Assembly: GCF_048593235.1 (NCBI RefSeq)
Contig: NC_133617.1
Span: 70,206,937 to 70,270,936 of the forward strand
Reading direction: 5' to 3'
From: Sminthopsis crassicaudata
Taxonomy: Eukaryota
DNA: 64,000 nucleotides
The position numbers and the translations under genes are program-made. Each line of letters opens with the position of its first letter. The first letter of the stretch is position 1. Of the stretch, positions 1,284-45,046 are shown in pieces. A model generated the notes under the pieces. That model ran no database searches. It was not told where the DNA came from and saw only the letters and a program-made list of their open reading frames with translations.

Positions 1284-17800
<16,517 letters not shown>

Positions 17801-35353: not shown

Positions 35354-38300
35354 TCAGGAGGTCTTAGAGGTCAGGGCAATCTGGAGGTCCTCGGGGGAGA
35401 AGACGCCATGCTCTGTGATGATGCCGCCAGTGATGAGCTCGTGAGGGGTGACGTCAAAGGCTGGGTTCCAAACTCCAATACCTAGGGAAAGGGGAGCCTG
35501 GGTGAGTGGGGGATCCCGGCCTGGCTTCAAGGAGAAATTAGGACCCATGCCCCATCTCCCTTGACCTGTCACTGGTACAAGTGTTTTAAAAGTTTTTTGG
35601 ACATTTTCTCACCATCTGTGCCTTCTTTCAAGGAAAGAGCAGCTCTATATAAAGGTTTATTCCTATTTTCCCTTCTCTTGCCCTTCCCTGCGTCTTGAAC
35701 TCTATTATGATTATACTTACAAGTTCCATTTCTAAAGCATTTTAACATTTATCAAATGCTTTCCTTAGAAGCCTATGAGCTAGGTAATGTGTTGTTGTTC
35801 AGTCATGTTTGATTCTCCATAATCCCATTTGGGGTTTTCTTGGCAAAGATAATGGAATGGCTTGCCATTTCCTTCTCCAGTTCATTTGGCAGATAAGAAA
35901 ACTGAAACAAACAAGGTTAAGTGATTTGCTCAGAGTCACATTGCAAGAATTTTTATACCTTCCCAACTCTGAACGGTATAGCAATTAGCATTGCATAGTG
36001 CAGTACACATTAGGTGCTTAGTAAATATTTATTGATAATACAGCACTAACACTTACCCTGGATTTGGATAAGGAGATGATTATGGTGATATGTCATGTCA
36101 ATTCTCTAGACTTCTGTCTAGAAATGAAGTCAGACTAAATGATTTCTTAAGGTTTTCTCTAGGAAACTTTTTTGTTTTCTCTTAGGTAGCTGGTGAACCG
36201 AGTTCAAATTCAACCTTAGATACTTAATAGCTGTATGACACTGGGGAAGTCACTTAACTTCTGTTTACCTCAGTTGCCATGACTATAGAATGGAGATAAT
36301 ACCTACTTACTTACCTTGCAGAGTTGTTATGGGGAACAANNNNNNNNNNNNNNNNNNNNNNNNNNNNNNNNNNNNNNNNNNNNNNNNNNNNNNNNNNNNN
36401 NNNNNNNNNNNNNNNNNNNNNNNNNNNNNNNNNNNNNNNNNNNNNNNNNNNNNNNNNNNNNNNNNNNNNNNNNNNNNNNNNNNNNNNNNNGAGACCATAT
36501 TTGAACTCGGGTCCTCCTGAATTCAGGGCTGGTGCTCTATCCACTGCGCCCCCTAGCTGTCCCCTACCAGGTACAATATAAAGGCTTGTTTTCTACTTGT
36601 CTTATTCCTGCCTTCTCTACCTCTAATGGGATCATAATTGCATTTCCTTTTTAAAAACACTTTAAAGTTGACCATAGATTTTCCTTAGATTCCTGTTATT
36701 TAGATCAGTGCTTAAACTATACTTGTGATAGTCCTCCCTTTTCACCTAAGAAATTTTTTTTTGTTTTGTTTTGTTTTGTTTTTTTATTTTATATATATAT
36801 ATATATATATTTTATAATATTATCCCTTGTATTCATTTTTCCAAATTACCCCCCTTCCCTCTATTCCCTCCCCCCGACGACAGGCAATACCATACATTTT
36901 ACATGTGTTACAATATAGTCTAGGTACAATACATGTGTGCGAATATCATTTTCTTGTTGCACAATAAACATTAGAATCCGAAGGTACATGCAACCTGGGC
37001 AGACAGATATTAGTGCTAACAATTTTCATTCCCCTCCCAGTGTTTCTTCTCTGGGTGCAGCTACCCCTGTCCATCATTGATCAACTGGAAGTGAGTTGAA
37101 TCTTCTTTATGTTGAAGATTTCCACTTCCATCAGAATACATCCCCATACAGTATTGTTGTTGAAGTGTACAGTGATCTTCTGGTTCTGCTCATTTCACTC
37201 AGCATCAGTTGATTTAAGTCTCTCCAGGCCTCTCTATATTCCTCCTGCTGGTCATTTCTTACAGAGCAATAATATTCCATAACCTTCATATACCACAATT
37301 TACCCAACCATTCTCCAACTGATGGACATCCATTCATCTTCCAGTTTCTAGCTACAACAAAAAGAGCTGCCACAAACATTTTGGCACATATATGTCTCTT
37401 TCCGCTCTTCAGTATTTCTTTGGGATATAAGCCCAGTAGTAGCGCTGCTGGGTCAAAGGGTATGCACAGTTTGATAACTTTTTGGGCATAATTCCAAATT
37501 GCTCTCCAGAATGGCTGGATTCTTTCACAACTCCACCAGCAATGTATTAGTGTCCCAATTTCCCCACATCCCCTCCAACATTTGTCATTATTTGTTCCTG
37601 TCATCTTAGCCAATCTGACAGGTGTGTAGTGGTATCTCAGAGTTGTCTTAATTTGCATTTCTCTGATCAGTAGTGATTTGGAACACTCTTTCATGTGAGT
37701 GGATATAGTTTCAATTTCTTCCTCTGAGAATTGTCTGTTCATATCCTTTGACCATTTATCAATTGGAGAATGGTTCGGTTTCTTATAAATTATGGTCAGT
37801 TCTCTATATATTTTGGAAATGAGACCTTTGTCAGAACCTTTGTTTTTAAAAATATTTTCCCAATTTGTTACTTCCCTTCTAATCTTGTTTGCATTAGTAT
37901 TATTTGTACACACCTAAGAAATTTTTACATGACCCTGGGGATATAGGTATACAAACAAGGGTACAGATCAAATGTTTACTGATAATTTTGTGACTTTCAC
38001 ATTCAGTTATGAGACCCCATATGGATTGTGAATCAGAGTTTAAGAAGCTGTTATCACAATAATAAAAGTATTCCTAGCCTTGTTTTATCTTCCCCCCCCC
38101 CCCTGAGGCTGGGGTTAAGTGACTTGCCCAGGGTCACACAGCTAGGAAGTGTTAAGTGTCTGAGATCAGATTTTGAACTTGGGTCCTCCTGAATTCAAGG
38201 CTGGTGCTCTATCCACTGCACCATCTAGCTGCCCCCCCAGCCTTATTTTATAACTGAGAAAACCAAGACGTAATATCAACTAGTGCTAGAGCTATAATTC

Positions 38301-41300
38301 CAGACTTGGTCTCTTGACTCCAAGACTGACACACTTCTTATCTACATAAAATATGCCTTCAGGAGTTTGTCTATCCTCTTTTTATTTATATCTGGAAGTT
38401 GTTTTCCAGTGTTTCTCAGCCTTTGTTCCCTTAGATCAAAGATGTAGAAAGGTTATGGAGGTTCTTGAACTTGAGGGGGAAATTACATCCTTATTTTCAC
38501 TGATCTCTAATTGGAATGTAGAATTTCTTTTGGTTATGAATTAAAAAAAAATACTTCTGAGAAAGGGTTCATAGACATCAGCAGAAGTCTGTGACAAAGA
38601 AAAGATTAAGTTGGTTGTCCCTTCCCCAAACTGGACCTAGGATGGGCTGTGCTACCTGTTTTATTGGATTCAGTTCAAAAGGCATCTAAATGCCTCACTG
38701 GGTGAAGTGCTGATGATGCAAGACAAAAATTAAATAGCTCCTGCCCTCAGAGTTTATACTCTATTCACTGCATATCTTGTTGATTAATGACTTCCTATCT
38801 CCTCCTACCCCCTGCTTTGCAGTAGGGGGGTAAGCTGTGAGGCAATAGAAAAGGGGCCAGGAGATAAAAAAGGTCTACAGCTTCTGTCTTCAGACCCAGT
38901 AAAGTGGTCCCATTCTCTTCCTGCCACCTGTCCTCAAAGGGAGACATGGAGTTCAGAAAACAAACAAGCATCAGGCCTTCTGGTCCTATCTGCTACTGTG
39001 CTGGACCTACCTGGGGCAGCAATCCTGGTCCCACAGAGACTGGTCAGCTCCTGGCCTGGCCGCTCCTCAATGACAATCTCCTGACCTGTCTTCAAGCTGA
39101 GATCACAAGAGGAAACGGGAGCAGCCACGTAGAAAGGGATCCCGTGGTGCTTGGCAACAATGGCCAGCTGGTAAGTCCCCACTTTGTTGGCAGTATCACC
39201 ATTGGCGACCACCCGGTCTGCTCCCACAATGACTGCTGCAGGGAGAAAGGAAAGGCCCTGTTAGCTGTTTAATCCCAGGCAAGTCTGGATTCTTGCTTCT
39301 TTGTCTGTTAAATGGGGGCATTACCTATTTTATGTGGTTGCTTTGAGGCAAGCAATATATAAACTTTGAAGAACCATAAAAATAGGTGCTAGTATTATTA
39401 CAGAAAGCTAAGGGGTAGAGGATTGAAAGGTCTCTAGAGTGCTGGGAAGGATTTATAGAAGTGATGAACAAGAATGGGTGCAGAAGACATCTTTGGGTTA
39501 TGAGCTGCCCAAATGGGGGAGGAGATTCTACATCTAACTGAAGTATTGAGGGCCAGGTAACAAGGAAAGGTTGGAAATTACAGGAGCATGGGGAAAGGAA
39601 TCTATGGCATCCATGGGGTAATAAGGAAGGAAACTAAGTAGTGCAAAGAGCACTGGAACTGAAGTCAGAAAATCTTGCTTCTACTCTGGGCTCTGCCAAT
39701 TAAATGTCTATTAAACTTGGGGAAGTCCTCTTTTTCTAATAAGATTCAGTTTATTCACTTCCTCCCACCCCATGCAATTAGGGAGAATGAATGGTTCCCA
39801 GCCCACCTCCGGACACTCAGCTAGACCACTGACCTCCCACCTCCTTGTGGGCCATGGCAGCAGCTACCATGCTGTCTGTGATGAGGGTGGCCGGGATCTT
39901 CTCATACACCAGCTCATAGGCCGTCAGCCGTGCCCCCTGGTTGTAGGGCCGAGTCTCCGTACAGAACACATGCTTCAGGCGGCCCAGGGCATGCAGAGAT
40001 CTGATCACACCTGTGAATGACCCACATTCCCCTTACCCCAAGGCAGAAGAGACAATAAGAAGCCCTGTGAGGGGCAGGGTAGAGTAGAGGCCCCATAGTG
40101 TGAGAGAAAGGAGTAGGGCAATCAAGGAAGGCTTCAGAGAAGAGGTGGCAACTTGAGCTGAGCCCTGAAGGAAGATTAGGGTTCTAAAAAGTAGAGAAGG
40201 GAGGGAATAAGTGTATTCAGGTATGGGAGTACAGCACATGAAAATGCATGTAGATGGGAAGTGGTATATTTCATTTAAAAGAGAATTAAGGGACCTCTAA
40301 GATGCTTTCCAGATCTCAGTTCTGTAATCCTATAATCTGTTCTTTCCCCTCACTCACCCAAAGCTGTTCCATAGCCTGCGGTGGCTAATGAGCCAGTGTT
40401 GCAGTGGGTCAGTACGGTCACCTGGCCACCCCCTGGTGCCACACGCTCCAGAAGGTGCTGGGCCCCATGGTCCCCAATGCTTTGGTTGTCCTTGATGTCT
40501 TTCTCCAGCATGTGCTCAGCCCAGCAGATCAACCTGGGGAGGGAGCAAGGGTGGGCGAATGAAGGATGGGTAAAGAGCTATTACCTGCACACCCAGCGGA
40601 TATCTGCTCCCAGCTGGCACTTAAACAGGTACCCGAATTCAGATTTGGTCCTAAAAGAATGTTAGCTGTATGATCTTGGCCAAGTCACAGTAAACATACC
40701 TCAATTTTTTGGTCCACAAAATGGGGATTAATTTATCTGTAGTGCTTAATCGTAGGGTTGTTATGAATCAAGAAACTCCCTCAGCCTGTTACAGAGAAAT
40801 TTGTAGCTTCACACAGATGGTTTGATCATTGAGATCTGACTTGTCCAGGGTCATATAGCCAGGATGTGTCAAGAGGCAGGTGAAACTTAAAAAATTACAT
40901 AAATACACAGTAACATAACACATGCTAGAAGAGATGTAACAAATCAGTAGAAAAACCTTTTAAATGAAGTTTTTGTACAATAGAAACTTCTCAGAAGTCG
41001 AAATTTAGGCTGTAAAAAACACATGCAAAACATACTTCTCTGAAAACACCAAACTACACAAATGCAGAATGAAAACAGCATTTCAACTCCACCAAAAGTA
41101 GTCTTCATAAAAGGTGTAAAAGTCACCTATTCACTAGGCACTGTTCACTTTTAAACAGGAGACAATAAAAAAATATTGTTCACAAAACAAAATCCCATTT
41201 CAGAAATCCACCATCTTCATGCTTTAGTAGCGACGAGGTGAATAAGATCGAGATCGAGACCGTGACCTGTAACCAACACGACTGTAATATGGGGAGGAGG

Positions 41301-44300
41301 GTGATCTCCTCCTATAAATCTGACCCCTGTCTTGGGCAGCTCTCCACCCTCCTCCTCCTCCACCACCTCCTCTGTAAGATCTGCTGTAATAATCACTATC
41401 ATCATAGCCTCGATTGTATCTTCGATCATAGTAATCACGAAGGTGAGAACGTCTTCCCATGTAGATTCCAGGGATTGGGCTGTGGGGTCTTTTTGTTATA
41501 GAAAACTCTACTCAGATCCTCCGGCCACCCAGTTCCATTCCATTGGCACGCTCTTTAGCTTCCTTGGCATCATCCACATTCTCAAAATAGACAAAGGCAA
41601 ATCCTTGGGGAGCGCGGGACTGTTGGTCATACACAATGGACACATCTGCGATTGGGCCATAATTGGAAAACACTTCTCTGAGATCCCTCTCGGTAGTATA
41701 CAGATTCAATCCAAACACTCCGAGACAACAGTTGGGGTCAGGATTGGCTCGATTCCCAATGTGCCACCTACGGGTAGACATTGGAGAATGACTGTGGCTA
41801 TATCGCCTTCGGTAATCTCGACTGTACCACCTGCTCTGGGATCATCTGTGGGAGCGGGAGCAAGAATGGGATCTAGTATAATACCTTTAAAAACTTCTGG
41901 ATCTCGATCGAGACTCTGAACTGGACCTCGACTTGGATCTGGAGCACTGGGAATCTTCCTGGGAACATGACCTTGCGGATTTCCCAGATCTGTGGGCACT
42001 GTCACTTCTGGAAGTGGAACGGGATTCCCCCTCACTGTAATTCTGCTCGCCGCTGTTGCTCATGGTGCCACTGGGCTGCCTCACTGCCCTCTCTTGCAGT
42101 TGAATCCGCTGCTGCCGGGTCTCCGCCGAAAACTGACCACCCGCCACTGCCTCTGTGTCCTGCTCTGCCCCACTTGTTGGGCGCCAAAATGTCAAGTCCT
42201 GTCGTCTCTTAATTGTAATCCTTCTCTGGGAGCAGGTTTCTTGGGAGACTTCTGGAGCCTCCAGCCAGAGCGAAGGTAGAATCTCGAATCCTTCTCTTGC
42301 TGAATCCTGACTCTGAATCTCCTCCAGCTTCCCTGAAGTTCTCCTGGGAAGTCTCATCCTTGACCCAATCCAGACTCTAACTTCTTCCAGACTGCCCTTA
42401 GCTCCTTTTGTCCTCCCAGAGAATGGGCTTGTGAGTACCCCAAAAGTGTAAACCTCTTTAAGAAGTCTAAAGGTGTAAACTTCCCCCCCCCCTCCTGAGG
42501 CTGGGGTTAAGTGACTTGCCCAGGGTCACACAGCTGGAAAGTGTTAAGTGTCTGAGATTACATTTGAACTCGGGTCCTCCTGAATTCAGGGCTGGTGCTC
42601 TATCCACTGTGCCACCTAGCTGCCCCTGGTGTAAACTTCTTTAAAGGTTTGAACTAAAGGTGTGAACTCTGAGCTCGAGAATTGTTAAGTACTATGCTAA
42701 ATTAGACAACCAAGTTAGCACCTAGTAATCCTAACAACCTATGTGACACTTAACCTCTGCCTGCCTCAGTTTCCTCACTTGTAAAAAGGAGAAAAATAAT
42801 AGCTCCTCCCTCCTAAGGTTGTTGTGAGAATAAAATGAAATAGTGTTTGTAAAGCATTTAGCACAGGTGCTAACTAGTGTTATGATTATTGGTTAATAGA
42901 GTTACTAGAAAATTCCTTTACCCATTTATCTTGTACTGATTAGTTAGTACATTGTATGGGTATTTTTCCATTGCATGAAGTAGAAAGAGCACAGGTGTTA
43001 GAGAAAAGGGTCCTGGGTTTGAATTCTTCATATTTGTATGATGTTGGGAAAGTCACTGTCCCCCACACTAAGCTTCAGGTTCCTTATCTAAAAAATGAAG
43101 AGGCGGCTGGCCCTGGGAGACCTATGATCTCCCCAGCTGACTAACTCTTACTTTGCCCTACCAAGTTAGTGAAATGGGAAGGTTTCCCAAAGGAGTTTCA
43201 AACTGCTTGTGTTCCCAGAACCACAAGAGCTTGGGGAGGGAGGACAGCTCTTCTCTTACCTCTCTCGGACTGCAGTCTCTGTTGCCCCTTCCTGTCCAGC
43301 CTCTTGGGTGGCTACCTCAGACATCTCCTGGGCAGCCTGAGCCATATTGACAGCAGTCGGCCTGGCTGTCACCAGGTACTTTAGTGAGTCCTGCACGAAG
43401 GTCACCAGGGCCTCAAGACCAGGTCCCCCTGATCCAGCGTGCAGCTCTACAGCCAAGCTCAGGCAGCCTACTATGGCAATAGCTGGAGCACCTCTCACCT
43501 GGGATGAGGAAGAGAATAAGTCAAGGGATCTGTCTCTGATTAATCCAGAGGGGTGACAGGTGAAACCTGGCCTGTTGGGGCTCAGGTTAGGATGCATACA
43601 GGCCTCAGGTTAAGCTATTCTGGGATACCCAAACTTTGCCTCAGTTTTCCTATCCTAAGTCAAGAAGTATTTTTGCATCCCCAGAACTTAGCACAGTGCC
43701 ATGCACATAGTAGTAGGTCCTTAATAAGTGTTTGTTAATTGGTTGGTTGATTATGCAGACCCTGAAGAGAAGAGGTCATAGACTCAGTCACAGACTGTCA
43801 GAAGAGTTCAAATGGCTTATTATCTAGACAAGGAAATTTGGGATTGGAGAAGGAAGGAGACTTTATTAAGATCAAAGAATGATTAAGCAGCAGAGAAGGA
43901 TTTGAATCCAAATATTCCATATCATATCCAAAGTTCTTTCTATTCTCTCATATTGCTGATTAATGGACAGTTGATTTATGCTGGCCATGCTGGGCACTCA
44001 AAACCCATTCTGATCCATAGTATCTACATAGTGCTAACAGATTAAACAGTTTTAGAGATCTTTGGAACAGAGAATATCTTAACTCAGAGGGGCTTAAATG
44101 ATAGTATGTCAGAGCTGGGAGGGCCCTTAGAACCCAGGATGTCAGAGCTGGGAGGGCCCTTAGAACCCGGGATGTCAGAGCTGGGAGGGCCCTTAGAACC
44201 CAGGATGTCAGGGCTGGGAGGGCCCTTAGAACCCAGGATGTCAGGGCTGGGAGGGCCCTTAGAACCCGGGATGTCAGAGCTGGGAGGGCCTTTAGAACCC

Positions 44301-45046
44301 AGGATGTCAGGGCTGGGAGGGCCCTTAGAACCCAGGAGGTCAGAGCTGGGAGGGCCCTTAGAACCCAGGAGGTCAGAGCTGGGAGGGCCCCTAGAACCCA
44401 GGACGTTAGAGCTGGGAGAGGCCTTAGAACCCAGGATGTCAGAGCTGGGAGGGCCCTTAGAACCCAGGACGTTAGAGCTGGGAGAGGCCTTAGAACTCAG
44501 GATGTCAGAGCTGGGAGGGCCCTTAGAACCCAGGATGTCAGAGCTGGGAGGGCCCTTAGAACCCAGGATGTCAGAGCTGGGAGGGTCCTTAGAACCCAGG
44601 ATGTCAGAGCTGGGAGGGCCCTTAGAACCCAGCATGTCAGAGCTGGGAGGGCCCTTAGAACCCAGGATGTTAGAGCTGGGAGGGCCCTTAGAACCCAGGA
44701 TGTCAGAGCTGGGAAGACACTTATTCAATGAGTGTCAGAGTAGGAAGTGACCGCAGGGCCCAGATCTGAGCCTGGAGGTGTTTTATGGGTTTCTCGGCTG
44801 CCTCCTCCCCAGCCCAGGGCTCACTTCTTCGGACACACAGCTGACCTCACACTAGGGTTCTCCAGGCCCTCCATCCCAGCCTGGCGCCCCCCCCCCCCCT
44901 TTCCCTTCTTCCACCTTCATGGCCCTGATGGCTTCCCAGGCCTGTTGCACAGAGGTCACGGCCTCATAATGGCTCTGTTGGGGCAGCAGCAGCTGGTCCA
45001 GGATGTGCAGGGAGCCCCGGTGATAGCGGATCGCTTCTAAGCTCAT
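35354..45046 (-). CDS. MRI1: Methylthioribose-1-phosphate isomerase 1 (methionine salvage), 6 exons, 358 aa
   Basis: Exons 45046-44915, 43498-43260, 40533-40358, 40010-39834, 39235-39011, 35481-35354; GT-AG; 1077 nt. Hallmark motifs [70 protein letters not shown]. Confidence 0.96.
35791..35950 (-). mobile_element. MAR1/MIR-type SINE
   Basis: gttgttgttcagtcatg...ggggttttcttggcaaagat...gccatttccttctccag is the MAR1 tail in reverse, followed by CORE. Confidence 0.7.
36340..36490. other. Assembly gap (151 N) in MRI1 intron 5
   Basis: Run of N; the right edge is a truncated WSINE1. Confidence 0.99.
36491..36564 (-). mobile_element. WSINE1 5' portion abutting the gap
   Basis: Same head sequence as the other WSINE1 copies. 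Confidence 0.85.
36759..37910 (-). mobile_element. Young 5'-truncated L1 (1.15 kb) in MRI1 intron 5, sense to MRI1
   Basis: 16-bp TSD cacctaagaaattttt at 36743-36758 and 37911-37926. Stop-free ORF2 C-terminus (ORF 37131-37913) with the Cys-rich [16 protein letters not shown] motif. 3' UTR and an (A/AAAAC) tail are present. Confidence 0.95.
38089..38238 (-). mobile_element. WSINE1 with G-rich tail
   Basis: Full-length copy; 13-bp TSD agcctt(g/a)ttttat at 38076-38088 and 38239-38251. Confidence 0.9.
40944..42063 (-). pseudogene. TRA2B: Intronless TRA2B (transformer-2 beta) retrocopy in MRI1 intron 2: CDS 42063-41224 plus ~280 nt of 3' UTR; three in-frame stops
   Basis: Translates as [16 protein letters not shown]..., RRM LGVFGL...[25 protein letters not shown], poly-[15 protein letters not shown] and [12 protein letters not shown]. 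No introns. Stops at 41889-41887, 41844-41842 and 41514-41512, all in one frame. The 3' UTR resembles recalled TRA2B UTR (aagtgaacagtgcctagtg...aaaaggtttttctactga). Confidence 0.95.
42167..42186 (-). mobile_element. Retroviral primer-binding site, tRNA-Lys(1,2) type, with a 2-nt insertion
   Basis: Minus strand TGGCGCCCAAC-AA-GTGGGGC versus canonical TGGCGCCCAACGTGGGGC; starts 3 nt after the LTR-terminal CA. Confidence 0.85.
42190..42736 (-). mobile_element. ERV LTR (probably class II/beta-like), ~390 bp after removing an inserted WSINE1
   Basis: Minus strand begins TGTTAGG (42736) and ends ...aggacttgaCA (42190), directly followed by the PBS. Body resembles marsupial LTRs I recall (ttgtctaatttagcatagtacttaac; ctaccttcg..ctggctggaggc; ttaagagacgacaggact). 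The outer flank is a MIR CORE fragment. Family not verified. Confidence 0.75.
42483..42627 (-). mobile_element. WSINE1 inserted inside the LTR
   Basis: Full-length SINE with TSD ggtgtaaactt at 42472-42482 and 42628-42638. Confidence 0.92.
44106..44715. repeat. 33-bp minisatellite, ~18.5 copies, in MRI1 intron 1
   Basis: Unit atgtcagagctgggagggcccttagaacccagg repeated head to tail with few variants and no spacers. Confidence 0.97.

Follow-up and report, generated by a model that had tools for sequence, protein, structure and literature searches.

A candidate LTR-mediated retrocopy of TRA2B behind a tRNA-Lys primer-binding site in an intron of MRI1 of the marsupial Sminthopsis crassicaudata

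In classical retroviral transduction, as known from the acute transforming retroviruses, host sequence is acquired through a read-through transcript and non-homologous RNA recombination. Host mRNAs may also be copied by elements with long terminal repeats (LTRs). In this LTR-mediated retroposition, reverse transcriptase switches templates between the RNA of the element and an mRNA packaged along with it (Tan et al. 2016, PMC5131818), and the products are recognized as partial mRNA copies that lack a poly(A) tail and a target-site duplication (TSD) and are flanked by LTR-element sequence (PMC5131818). Three such retrocopies have been documented in human and eight in mouse, among them the human FAM8A1_r and a mouse retrocopy borne by IAPEy (PMC5131818). 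We found no reported case of an LTR-mediated retrocopy from a marsupial in the literature. Here we describe a candidate from the dunnart Sminthopsis crassicaudata. It lies in a stretch of 64,000 nt of contig NC_133617.1 (positions 70,206,937 to 70,270,936 of the forward strand, assembly GCF_048593235.1), which was analyzed as a whole and is called the window below. Read on the minus strand from position 42736 down to 40944, an LTR-like segment, a primer-binding site (PBS) for tRNA-Lys and a leader precede a spliced, 3'-truncated and decayed cDNA of TRA2B, and the entire unit is located in intron 2 of the gene MRI1. We give about an even chance to the reading that this unit preserves the 5' portion of an old chimera made by reverse transcription, that is, an LTR-mediated (retroviral-type) TRA2B retrocopy. 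All of the evidence comes from this one locus.

The order on the minus strand is a 547-nt segment with TG and CA at its ends, the trinucleotide TTT, a 20-nt PBS, a GC-rich leader of 103 nt, the ATG of a TRA2B-like frame, and the TRA2B 3' untranslated region (UTR) (Table 1). This resembles the outcome of classical retroviral transduction in that a spliced host coding sequence (CDS) stands behind LTR, PBS, and leader, where gag belongs. Unlike in classical transduction, however, the TRA2B part comprises exon 1 with the ATG and was thus not acquired by splicing to an exon further downstream, nothing suggests that the element replicated or was amplified, and the TRA2B cargo is a decayed pseudogene. 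The unit is like a provirus in having a tRNA PBS 3 nt behind a putative 5' LTR, but it differs from one because two LTRs in direct orientation were not found in the 64 kb and gag, pol, and env were not found in intron 2. With the cases of Tan et al. it shares an intronless, 3'-truncated host cDNA without poly(A) and without an L1-type TSD, which takes the place of the internal genes of the element. The unit is best filed with the LTR-mediated retrocopies, as a candidate member of that class and not as a new kind of element. An initial annotation of this DNA, made from the letters alone, had proposed the capture of a TRA2B mRNA by a retrovirus. Its coordinates proved accurate when the minus strand was re-read from 42736 to 40944, and the LTR-like segment, PBS, leader, and spliced tail-less cDNA follow each other in the order it gave, which is the order expected if an LTR element captures an mRNA during reverse transcription, but element sequence at both ends of the cDNA, an LTR family, and a switch point were not found.

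The TRA2B-like CDS is readable in a single register with 279 sense codons; it contains three premature stops and is free of frameshifts. Its segments between the stops were compared separately. The piece bearing the RNA recognition motif (RRM) matches 'Transformer-2 protein homolog beta' in PDB (E=3.9e-49) and also RRM_1 of Pfam. Overall the copy is 86% identical to the 288-aa TRA2B, an RS1-RRM-RS2 protein of which residues 1-288 are covered. Nine exon blocks that are spread over ~17 kb of the rodent TRA2B gene (L002) correspond to one contiguous stretch of the window (42065-40944), and the exons of the duck gene (L003) likewise collapse onto the contiguous copy. Thus, the TRA2B copy is a fully processed cDNA. 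These matches agree with the intronless, full-length CDS of the initial annotation as far as splicing and extent are concerned. The copy is not an intact cassette, however: three premature stops interrupt the frame and 31 of the 247 covered residues that are invariant in five tetrapod orthologues are changed. About 6% of the non-synonymous sites show a change. Judged from this pattern of neutral decay, the copy is a decayed pseudogene, and at the rates usually quoted for mammals ~6% change means an age of tens of millions of years. The RRM-bearing open reading frame (ORF) has no match above 92% identity in the protein collection searched, which therefore does not contain this locus or an orthologous copy. 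A further ORF of 156 aa (42064-42357 region, minus strand) is open from the LTR-like segment via PBS and leader and continues in frame into the TRA2B ATG; the protein search returned no homologue of it. The 98 stop-free codons upstream of the ATG were rejected as a meaningful frame, since an equal stretch occurs in 6.8% of shuffles. No sign of function was found at the unit: the TRA2B frame is broken, promoter signals were not seen, and the open stretch upstream turns up in about 7% of shuffles. The defective ERV vector and the promoter that its LTR could have supplied, both suggested by the initial annotation, are conjectural.

The TRA2B homology stops at 40944 ± 2, within the 3'UTR, in every comparison made. 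Conservation of the 3'UTR among the rodent gene, the duck gene, and a canid retrocopy extends ~95-100 nt further, as far as the AATAAA and poly(A) site, and the 3'UTR homology with a second TRA2B-like locus of the dunnart (L017) also runs beyond this point. The TRA2B copy in the window thus falls ~100 nt short of the poly(A) site present in the others and is 3'-truncated and tail-less. The canid retrocopy (L001:2831-4311, Nyctereutes procyonoides, 288 aa) has a 12-nt TSD, an AATAAA signal, and a poly(A) tail. By these features it is a textbook L1-type retrocopy, and it serves here as a control for what L1 makes of the same mRNA. The window copy is like it in being intronless, in representing the same mRNA isoform, and in extending from the 5'UTR into the 3'UTR. 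Unlike it, the window copy lacks TSD, AATAAA, and poly(A) and ends ~100 nt earlier. The canid locus is annotated as 'TRA2B / TRA2B-like', and the 10-kb gene range given there looks over-extended. Neither an A-run nor a poly(A) remnant is present in the 3' flank of the unit (40943-40837), and a repeat flanking the unit on both sides was not seen. In these respects, and in the ~280 nt of 3'UTR, the description given by the initial annotation holds. The 3' flank also has no similarity to the pieces of the LTR-like segment (z <= 1.5) and contains no polypurine tract (PPT), LTR, or ERV (endogenous retrovirus) remnant. A second copy of the LTR pieces, the PBS, or the leader does not occur in the 64-kb window.

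The second TRA2B-like locus of this genome (L017:5001-6620, GCA_048593235.1) is annotated as 'TRA2B-like' and has an intact frame of 300 aa. It shares 68% nucleotide identity with the window copy as well as homology in the 3'UTR, and it resembles neither the LTR-like segment nor the PBS. From its sequence, this locus looks like an old, diverged dunnart retrogene of TRA2B, and it is possibly a functional marsupial TRA2B retrogene.

Among the parts of the unit, the PBS is the strongest single piece of evidence for retroviral sequence upstream of the TRA2B cDNA. The 18-nt tRNA-Lys PBS printed in PMC4261875 was used as comparator, and all of its 18 positions are matched, with an insertion of 2 nt. 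With 0-3 inserted bases allowed, the pattern was found a single time in the window and never in 100 dinucleotide-preserving shuffles; taken alone, the first 11 nt of the PBS are not significant. The site precedes the TRA2B cDNA in sense orientation and lies 3 nt behind the CA of the LTR-like segment, as the initial annotation had stated for a Lys1,2 PBS. The match contains TGG, the complement of CCA. In tRNAs the CCA is added post-transcriptionally. No further complementarity to tRNA follows the PBS, and ARAGORN and Rfam find nothing there. An antisense tRNA gene and a tRNA-derived short interspersed element (SINE) were considered as sources of the site and rejected, because the complement of CCA is present, tRNA and Rfam matches are lacking, and the similarity does not continue. 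The inclusion of TGG, the sense-strand position ahead of the cDNA, and the missing tRNA continuation argue for a PBS that belonged to a retroviral genome and against tRNA-primed cDNA. When the junction of LTR-like segment and PBS was searched for, viral contigs of IMG/VR gave no match, and the 11 matches among JGI metagenome contigs were in unrelated contigs and covered only the 21-nt pattern itself.

The identification of the segment upstream of the PBS as an LTR is thin, for it draws on the adjacent PBS, on the TG and CA ends, which are trivial by chance, and on a direct repeat of ~40 nt within the segment. The two repeat units (42668-42629 and 42481-42446; score 37) lie on either side of a nested SINE and resemble an enhancer-type repeat of a U3 region. 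The segment is old and CpG-depleted (GC 35-48%, CpG observed/expected ratio 0.19). On its 5' side it borders on an old MIR-like repeat, and this boundary may be off by some tens of nucleotides. The 6 nt beyond its two ends differ (ATAGGT upstream, TTTTGG downstream), and this absence of a 4-6-bp TSD, together with the PBS next to it, indicates that the segment is not a solo LTR. The initial annotation had called the segment an LTR without mentioning the SINE. This assignment is favored by the CA 3 nt before the PBS, the length after subtraction of the SINE, and the repeat, but not by a family, a TATA box, or an AATAAA signal. The LTR-like pieces on the two sides of the SINE were compared apart. 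The SINE itself has an exact 12-nt TSD (42639-42628 and 42483-42472) and a second copy, 92-94% identical, at 38092-38235. Both copies end in a G-run (a C-run on the plus strand) and have no A-tail. The WSINE1 family was silenced about 30 Ma ago (PMC4408412). If the nested SINE were WSINE1, the LTR would be older than ~30 Ma, which would agree with the decay of the TRA2B cDNA. Class II ERVs dominate dasyurid genomes, and their LTRs measure 373-469 nt in dasyurids (MEBrv clades, PMC11334065). The 404 nt of the LTR-like segment without the SINE fall into this range, the comparison being one of length only. Beta-type retroviruses are usually primed by tRNA-Lys. The donor may have been a Lys-primed ERV of the class II or beta-like type, whose identity as an ERV beyond the PBS we infer.

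The ERV/TRA2B junction should lie somewhere within the leader (42166-42064). With 64% GC and a CpG observed/expected ratio of 0.50, as compared to 48% and 0.19 in the LTR-like segment, the composition of the leader fits a 5'UTR in a CpG island. Local alignments of the leader with TRA2B 5'UTRs of a canid, a rodent, and a desman did not stand out from shuffles (z <= 1.1), a comparison of low power because the eutherian 5'UTRs can barely be aligned with each other. The region upstream of the dunnart retrogene was not similar either (z 0.6), apart from a single match of 13/14 nt ~30-45 nt before the ATG. The leader alignment suggested by the initial annotation as a way to the switch point was thus not significant with eutherian or dunnart-retrogene comparators, and the switch point was not located. 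A MAFFT pairing of the PBS with a stretch of rodent 5'UTR was discarded, since this stretch is a rodent-specific insert absent in desman and canid. The parental marsupial TRA2B gene was not among the results of a HMMER search of representative sequences, of the cluster listings, or of a full-length search, which returned only eutherian, bird, and other loci (L001-L005) and L017. Many of the cases of Tan et al. show microsimilarity at their junctions.

If the unit is an LTR-mediated retrocopy, it may have originated as follows. TRA2B mRNA would have been co-packaged with, or fused to, the RNA of the ERV, and reverse transcriptase would have changed over from the ERV RNA to a point in the TRA2B 3'UTR that precedes the poly(A) site. 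A switch at this position would leave the TRA2B copy without a tail. The mRNA would then have been copied toward its 5' end. Another switch, this time into the ERV leader, or else an aberrant plus-strand transfer would have linked the product to U3-R-U5-PBS. LTR plus PBS is the exact content of plus-strand strong-stop DNA. An aberrant transfer of this DNA onto the minus-strand cDNA of TRA2B would place the junction right behind the PBS, a position that is otherwise improbable. PPT and 3' LTR may have been deleted later, or they may never have been integrated if an incomplete cDNA was captured at a chromosome break without integrase. Afterwards, the unit would have decayed neutrally over tens of millions of years and received the SINE insertion as an inert passenger in MRI1 intron 2. 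Two more specific versions of this history seem improbable to us: that the unit is the relic of a non-autonomous ERV that spread with a splicing-factor cDNA on board, or that a chimera of strong-stop DNA and host cDNA was captured in one step at a chromosome break. We know of no documented case in which an incomplete chimeric reverse transcript was captured at a chromosome break in a mammalian germline. A spread element, if this reading were true, should have left further LTR-PBS-TRA2B junctions between paired LTRs in this genome or in those of relatives.

Several kinds of evidence speak for retroviral capture. Chance does not account for the PBS match, which lies 3 nt behind the CA, and its sense orientation ahead of the cDNA and its complement of CCA suit the layout of a retroviral genome. 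The TRA2B cDNA is fully spliced, has neither poly(A) nor TSD, and ends before the poly(A) site that an L1-made copy retains; a partial, tail-less copy of this kind next to LTR-element sequence recalls the published signature of LTR-mediated retroposition. The LTR-like segment is suggestive in its length, within the dasyurid range, and in its ~40-nt internal repeat. Finally, a junction within ~100 nt of the PBS would be improbable for a random L1 insertion. Several observations weigh against this reading. No retroelement sequence is present 3' of the cDNA, so that an additional loss event must be assumed; the cases of Tan et al. have the element on both sides, whereas here only a 5' LTR and PBS are seen. 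A second LTR or another ERV remnant was found nowhere in the 64 kb (blastn with word sizes 7-9, Smith-Waterman alignment with shuffles), and the statement of the initial annotation that a 3' LTR is not visible thus holds for the window and, down to traces, for the 3' flank. The LTR-like segment contains neither TATAAA nor AATAAA but only an AATTAA 19 nt from its 3' end, and it has no relatives in the window, in IMG/VR, in JGI metagenome contigs, or among ORF homologues; these collections lack marsupial genomes, so the absence of relatives from them says little. The leader matches no comparator significantly, and hence a switch point or microhomology has not been located in it. Moreover, a single locus cannot prove capture, and in mammals L1 makes nearly all gene retrocopies, which vastly outnumber the LTR-mediated ones (PMC5131818).

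This dominance of L1 is also what recommends a nested insertion, in which an L1-made TRA2B pseudogene landed in the leader of an ERV and one deletion took away the end of the 3'UTR, the tail, the TSD, and the rest of the provirus. We regard this scenario as unlikely, though not to the point of dismissing it. An L1-like ORF exists nearby (37131-37913), and L1 retrocopies truncated within the 5'UTR are, as is generally known, common. Because retroviral capture assumes the loss of the 3' half as well, the 3' truncation does not discriminate between the two models, each of which requires one rare event plus a 3' loss and therefore the same number of events. However, the L1 copy would have had to land within ~100 nt of the PBS, presumably a tiny target in the genome, the deletion would have had to reach from inside the retrocopy to beyond the 3' LTR, and no A-rich remnant or TSD was seen. 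A secondary juxtaposition appears distinctly improbable. Here the retrocopy would have been in the intron already when an ERV integrated just upstream, and separate deletions would have removed the ERV body with the 3' LTR and the 3' end of the retrocopy. Both components are indeed old and decayed, and several repeats have altered the shape of the intron, but the scenario calls for two or more independent deletions whose end points are unusual. ERVs are, as is generally known, normally lost by LTR-LTR recombination, which produces a solo LTR and does not keep the PBS, and the LTR-like segment lacks a flanking TSD. It seems very improbable indeed that the upstream segment is not an LTR and that a PBS-like 20-mer stands by chance, or as something unrelated, beside an ordinary retrocopy that was damaged later. 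The missing family members, the missing promoter and poly(A) signals, the trivial TG and CA ends, and the 2-nt insertion in the PBS would all fit this explanation. It is opposed by the uniqueness of the PBS pattern in the window and its absence from the shuffles, by the TGG and the distance of 3 nt to the CA, and by the retrocopy, which independently lacks the hallmarks of L1.

The host gene was identified as MRI1 by a match to PDB 4LDR (E=7.8e-29) and by Pfam IF-2B on three exon ORFs. On the minus strand, exon 1 is located at ~45046-44915, exon 2 within 43597-43259, exon 3 within 40532-40353, and exon 4 within 40008-39820. These exon ORFs bear out the earlier placement of the unit in intron 2 and in sense orientation to MRI1. 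Intron 2 measures 2726 nt, 1793 nt of which belong to the unit. Repeats, the LTR-like segment, PBS and leader, and TRA2B account for the whole intron, and gag, pol, and env are absent from its 2726 nt, as had been noted initially. MRI1 intron 1 contains a 33-nt minisatellite (44106-44714; 18.5 copies, 93% matches) that gives rise to spurious 214-aa ORFs on both strands. A ZSWIM4-like gene neighbors MRI1; its terminal exon (1287-2138, minus strand) encodes a ZSWIM4-8 C-terminal domain (Pfam PF21055, E=8.8e-72). The frame at 37131-37913 (minus strand) is open for 260 aa and adjoins a 151-nt run of N (36340-36490). It has no Pfam match at E <= 0.001, and we interpret it as the C-terminal portion of L1 ORF2.

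Table 1. Features of the TRA2B unit and its surroundings (positions in the window)
Feature	Position	Strand	Remarks
LTR-like segment, putative U3-R-U5	42190..42736	-	TG...CA ends; CA 3 nt before PBS; 404 nt minus SINE
Nested tRNA-head/CORE-type SINE with G-run tail	42484..42627	-	12-nt TSD; second copy in window
Span with ~40-nt direct repeat (two copies) around SINE	42446..42668	-	local alignment score 37
Spacer of 3 nt (TTT)	42189-42187	-	between CA end and PBS
PBS, complementary to 3' end of tRNA-Lys(1,2)	42167..42186	-	18/18 with 2-nt insertion
Leader, 103 nt (ERV leader and/or TRA2B 5'UTR)	42064..42166	-	putatively contains ERV/TRA2B junction
Intronless TRA2B coding sequence, broken	41224..42063	-	3 stops, 0 frameshifts, 279 sense codons
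TRA2B 3'UTR, first ~280 nt	40944..41223	-	homology ends ~95-100 nt short of natural poly(A) site
3' flank	40837..40943	-	66 AT-rich nt (40943-40878), then CORE-SINE/MIR-like fragment (40877-40837)
5' flank, end of old MIR/CORE-like repeat in opposite orientation	42747..42795	-	neighbor, outside unit
Host gene MRI1, exon-bearing ORFs	39820..45046	-	unit in intron 2, sense

As a single, old, and dead copy, the TRA2B unit has its value as a comparative case and not as a functional element. A marsupial case with the junction right behind the PBS would add evidence that ERVs pick up host mRNAs, and the position of this junction could reveal at which stage of the reverse-transcription cycle such mRNAs are captured.

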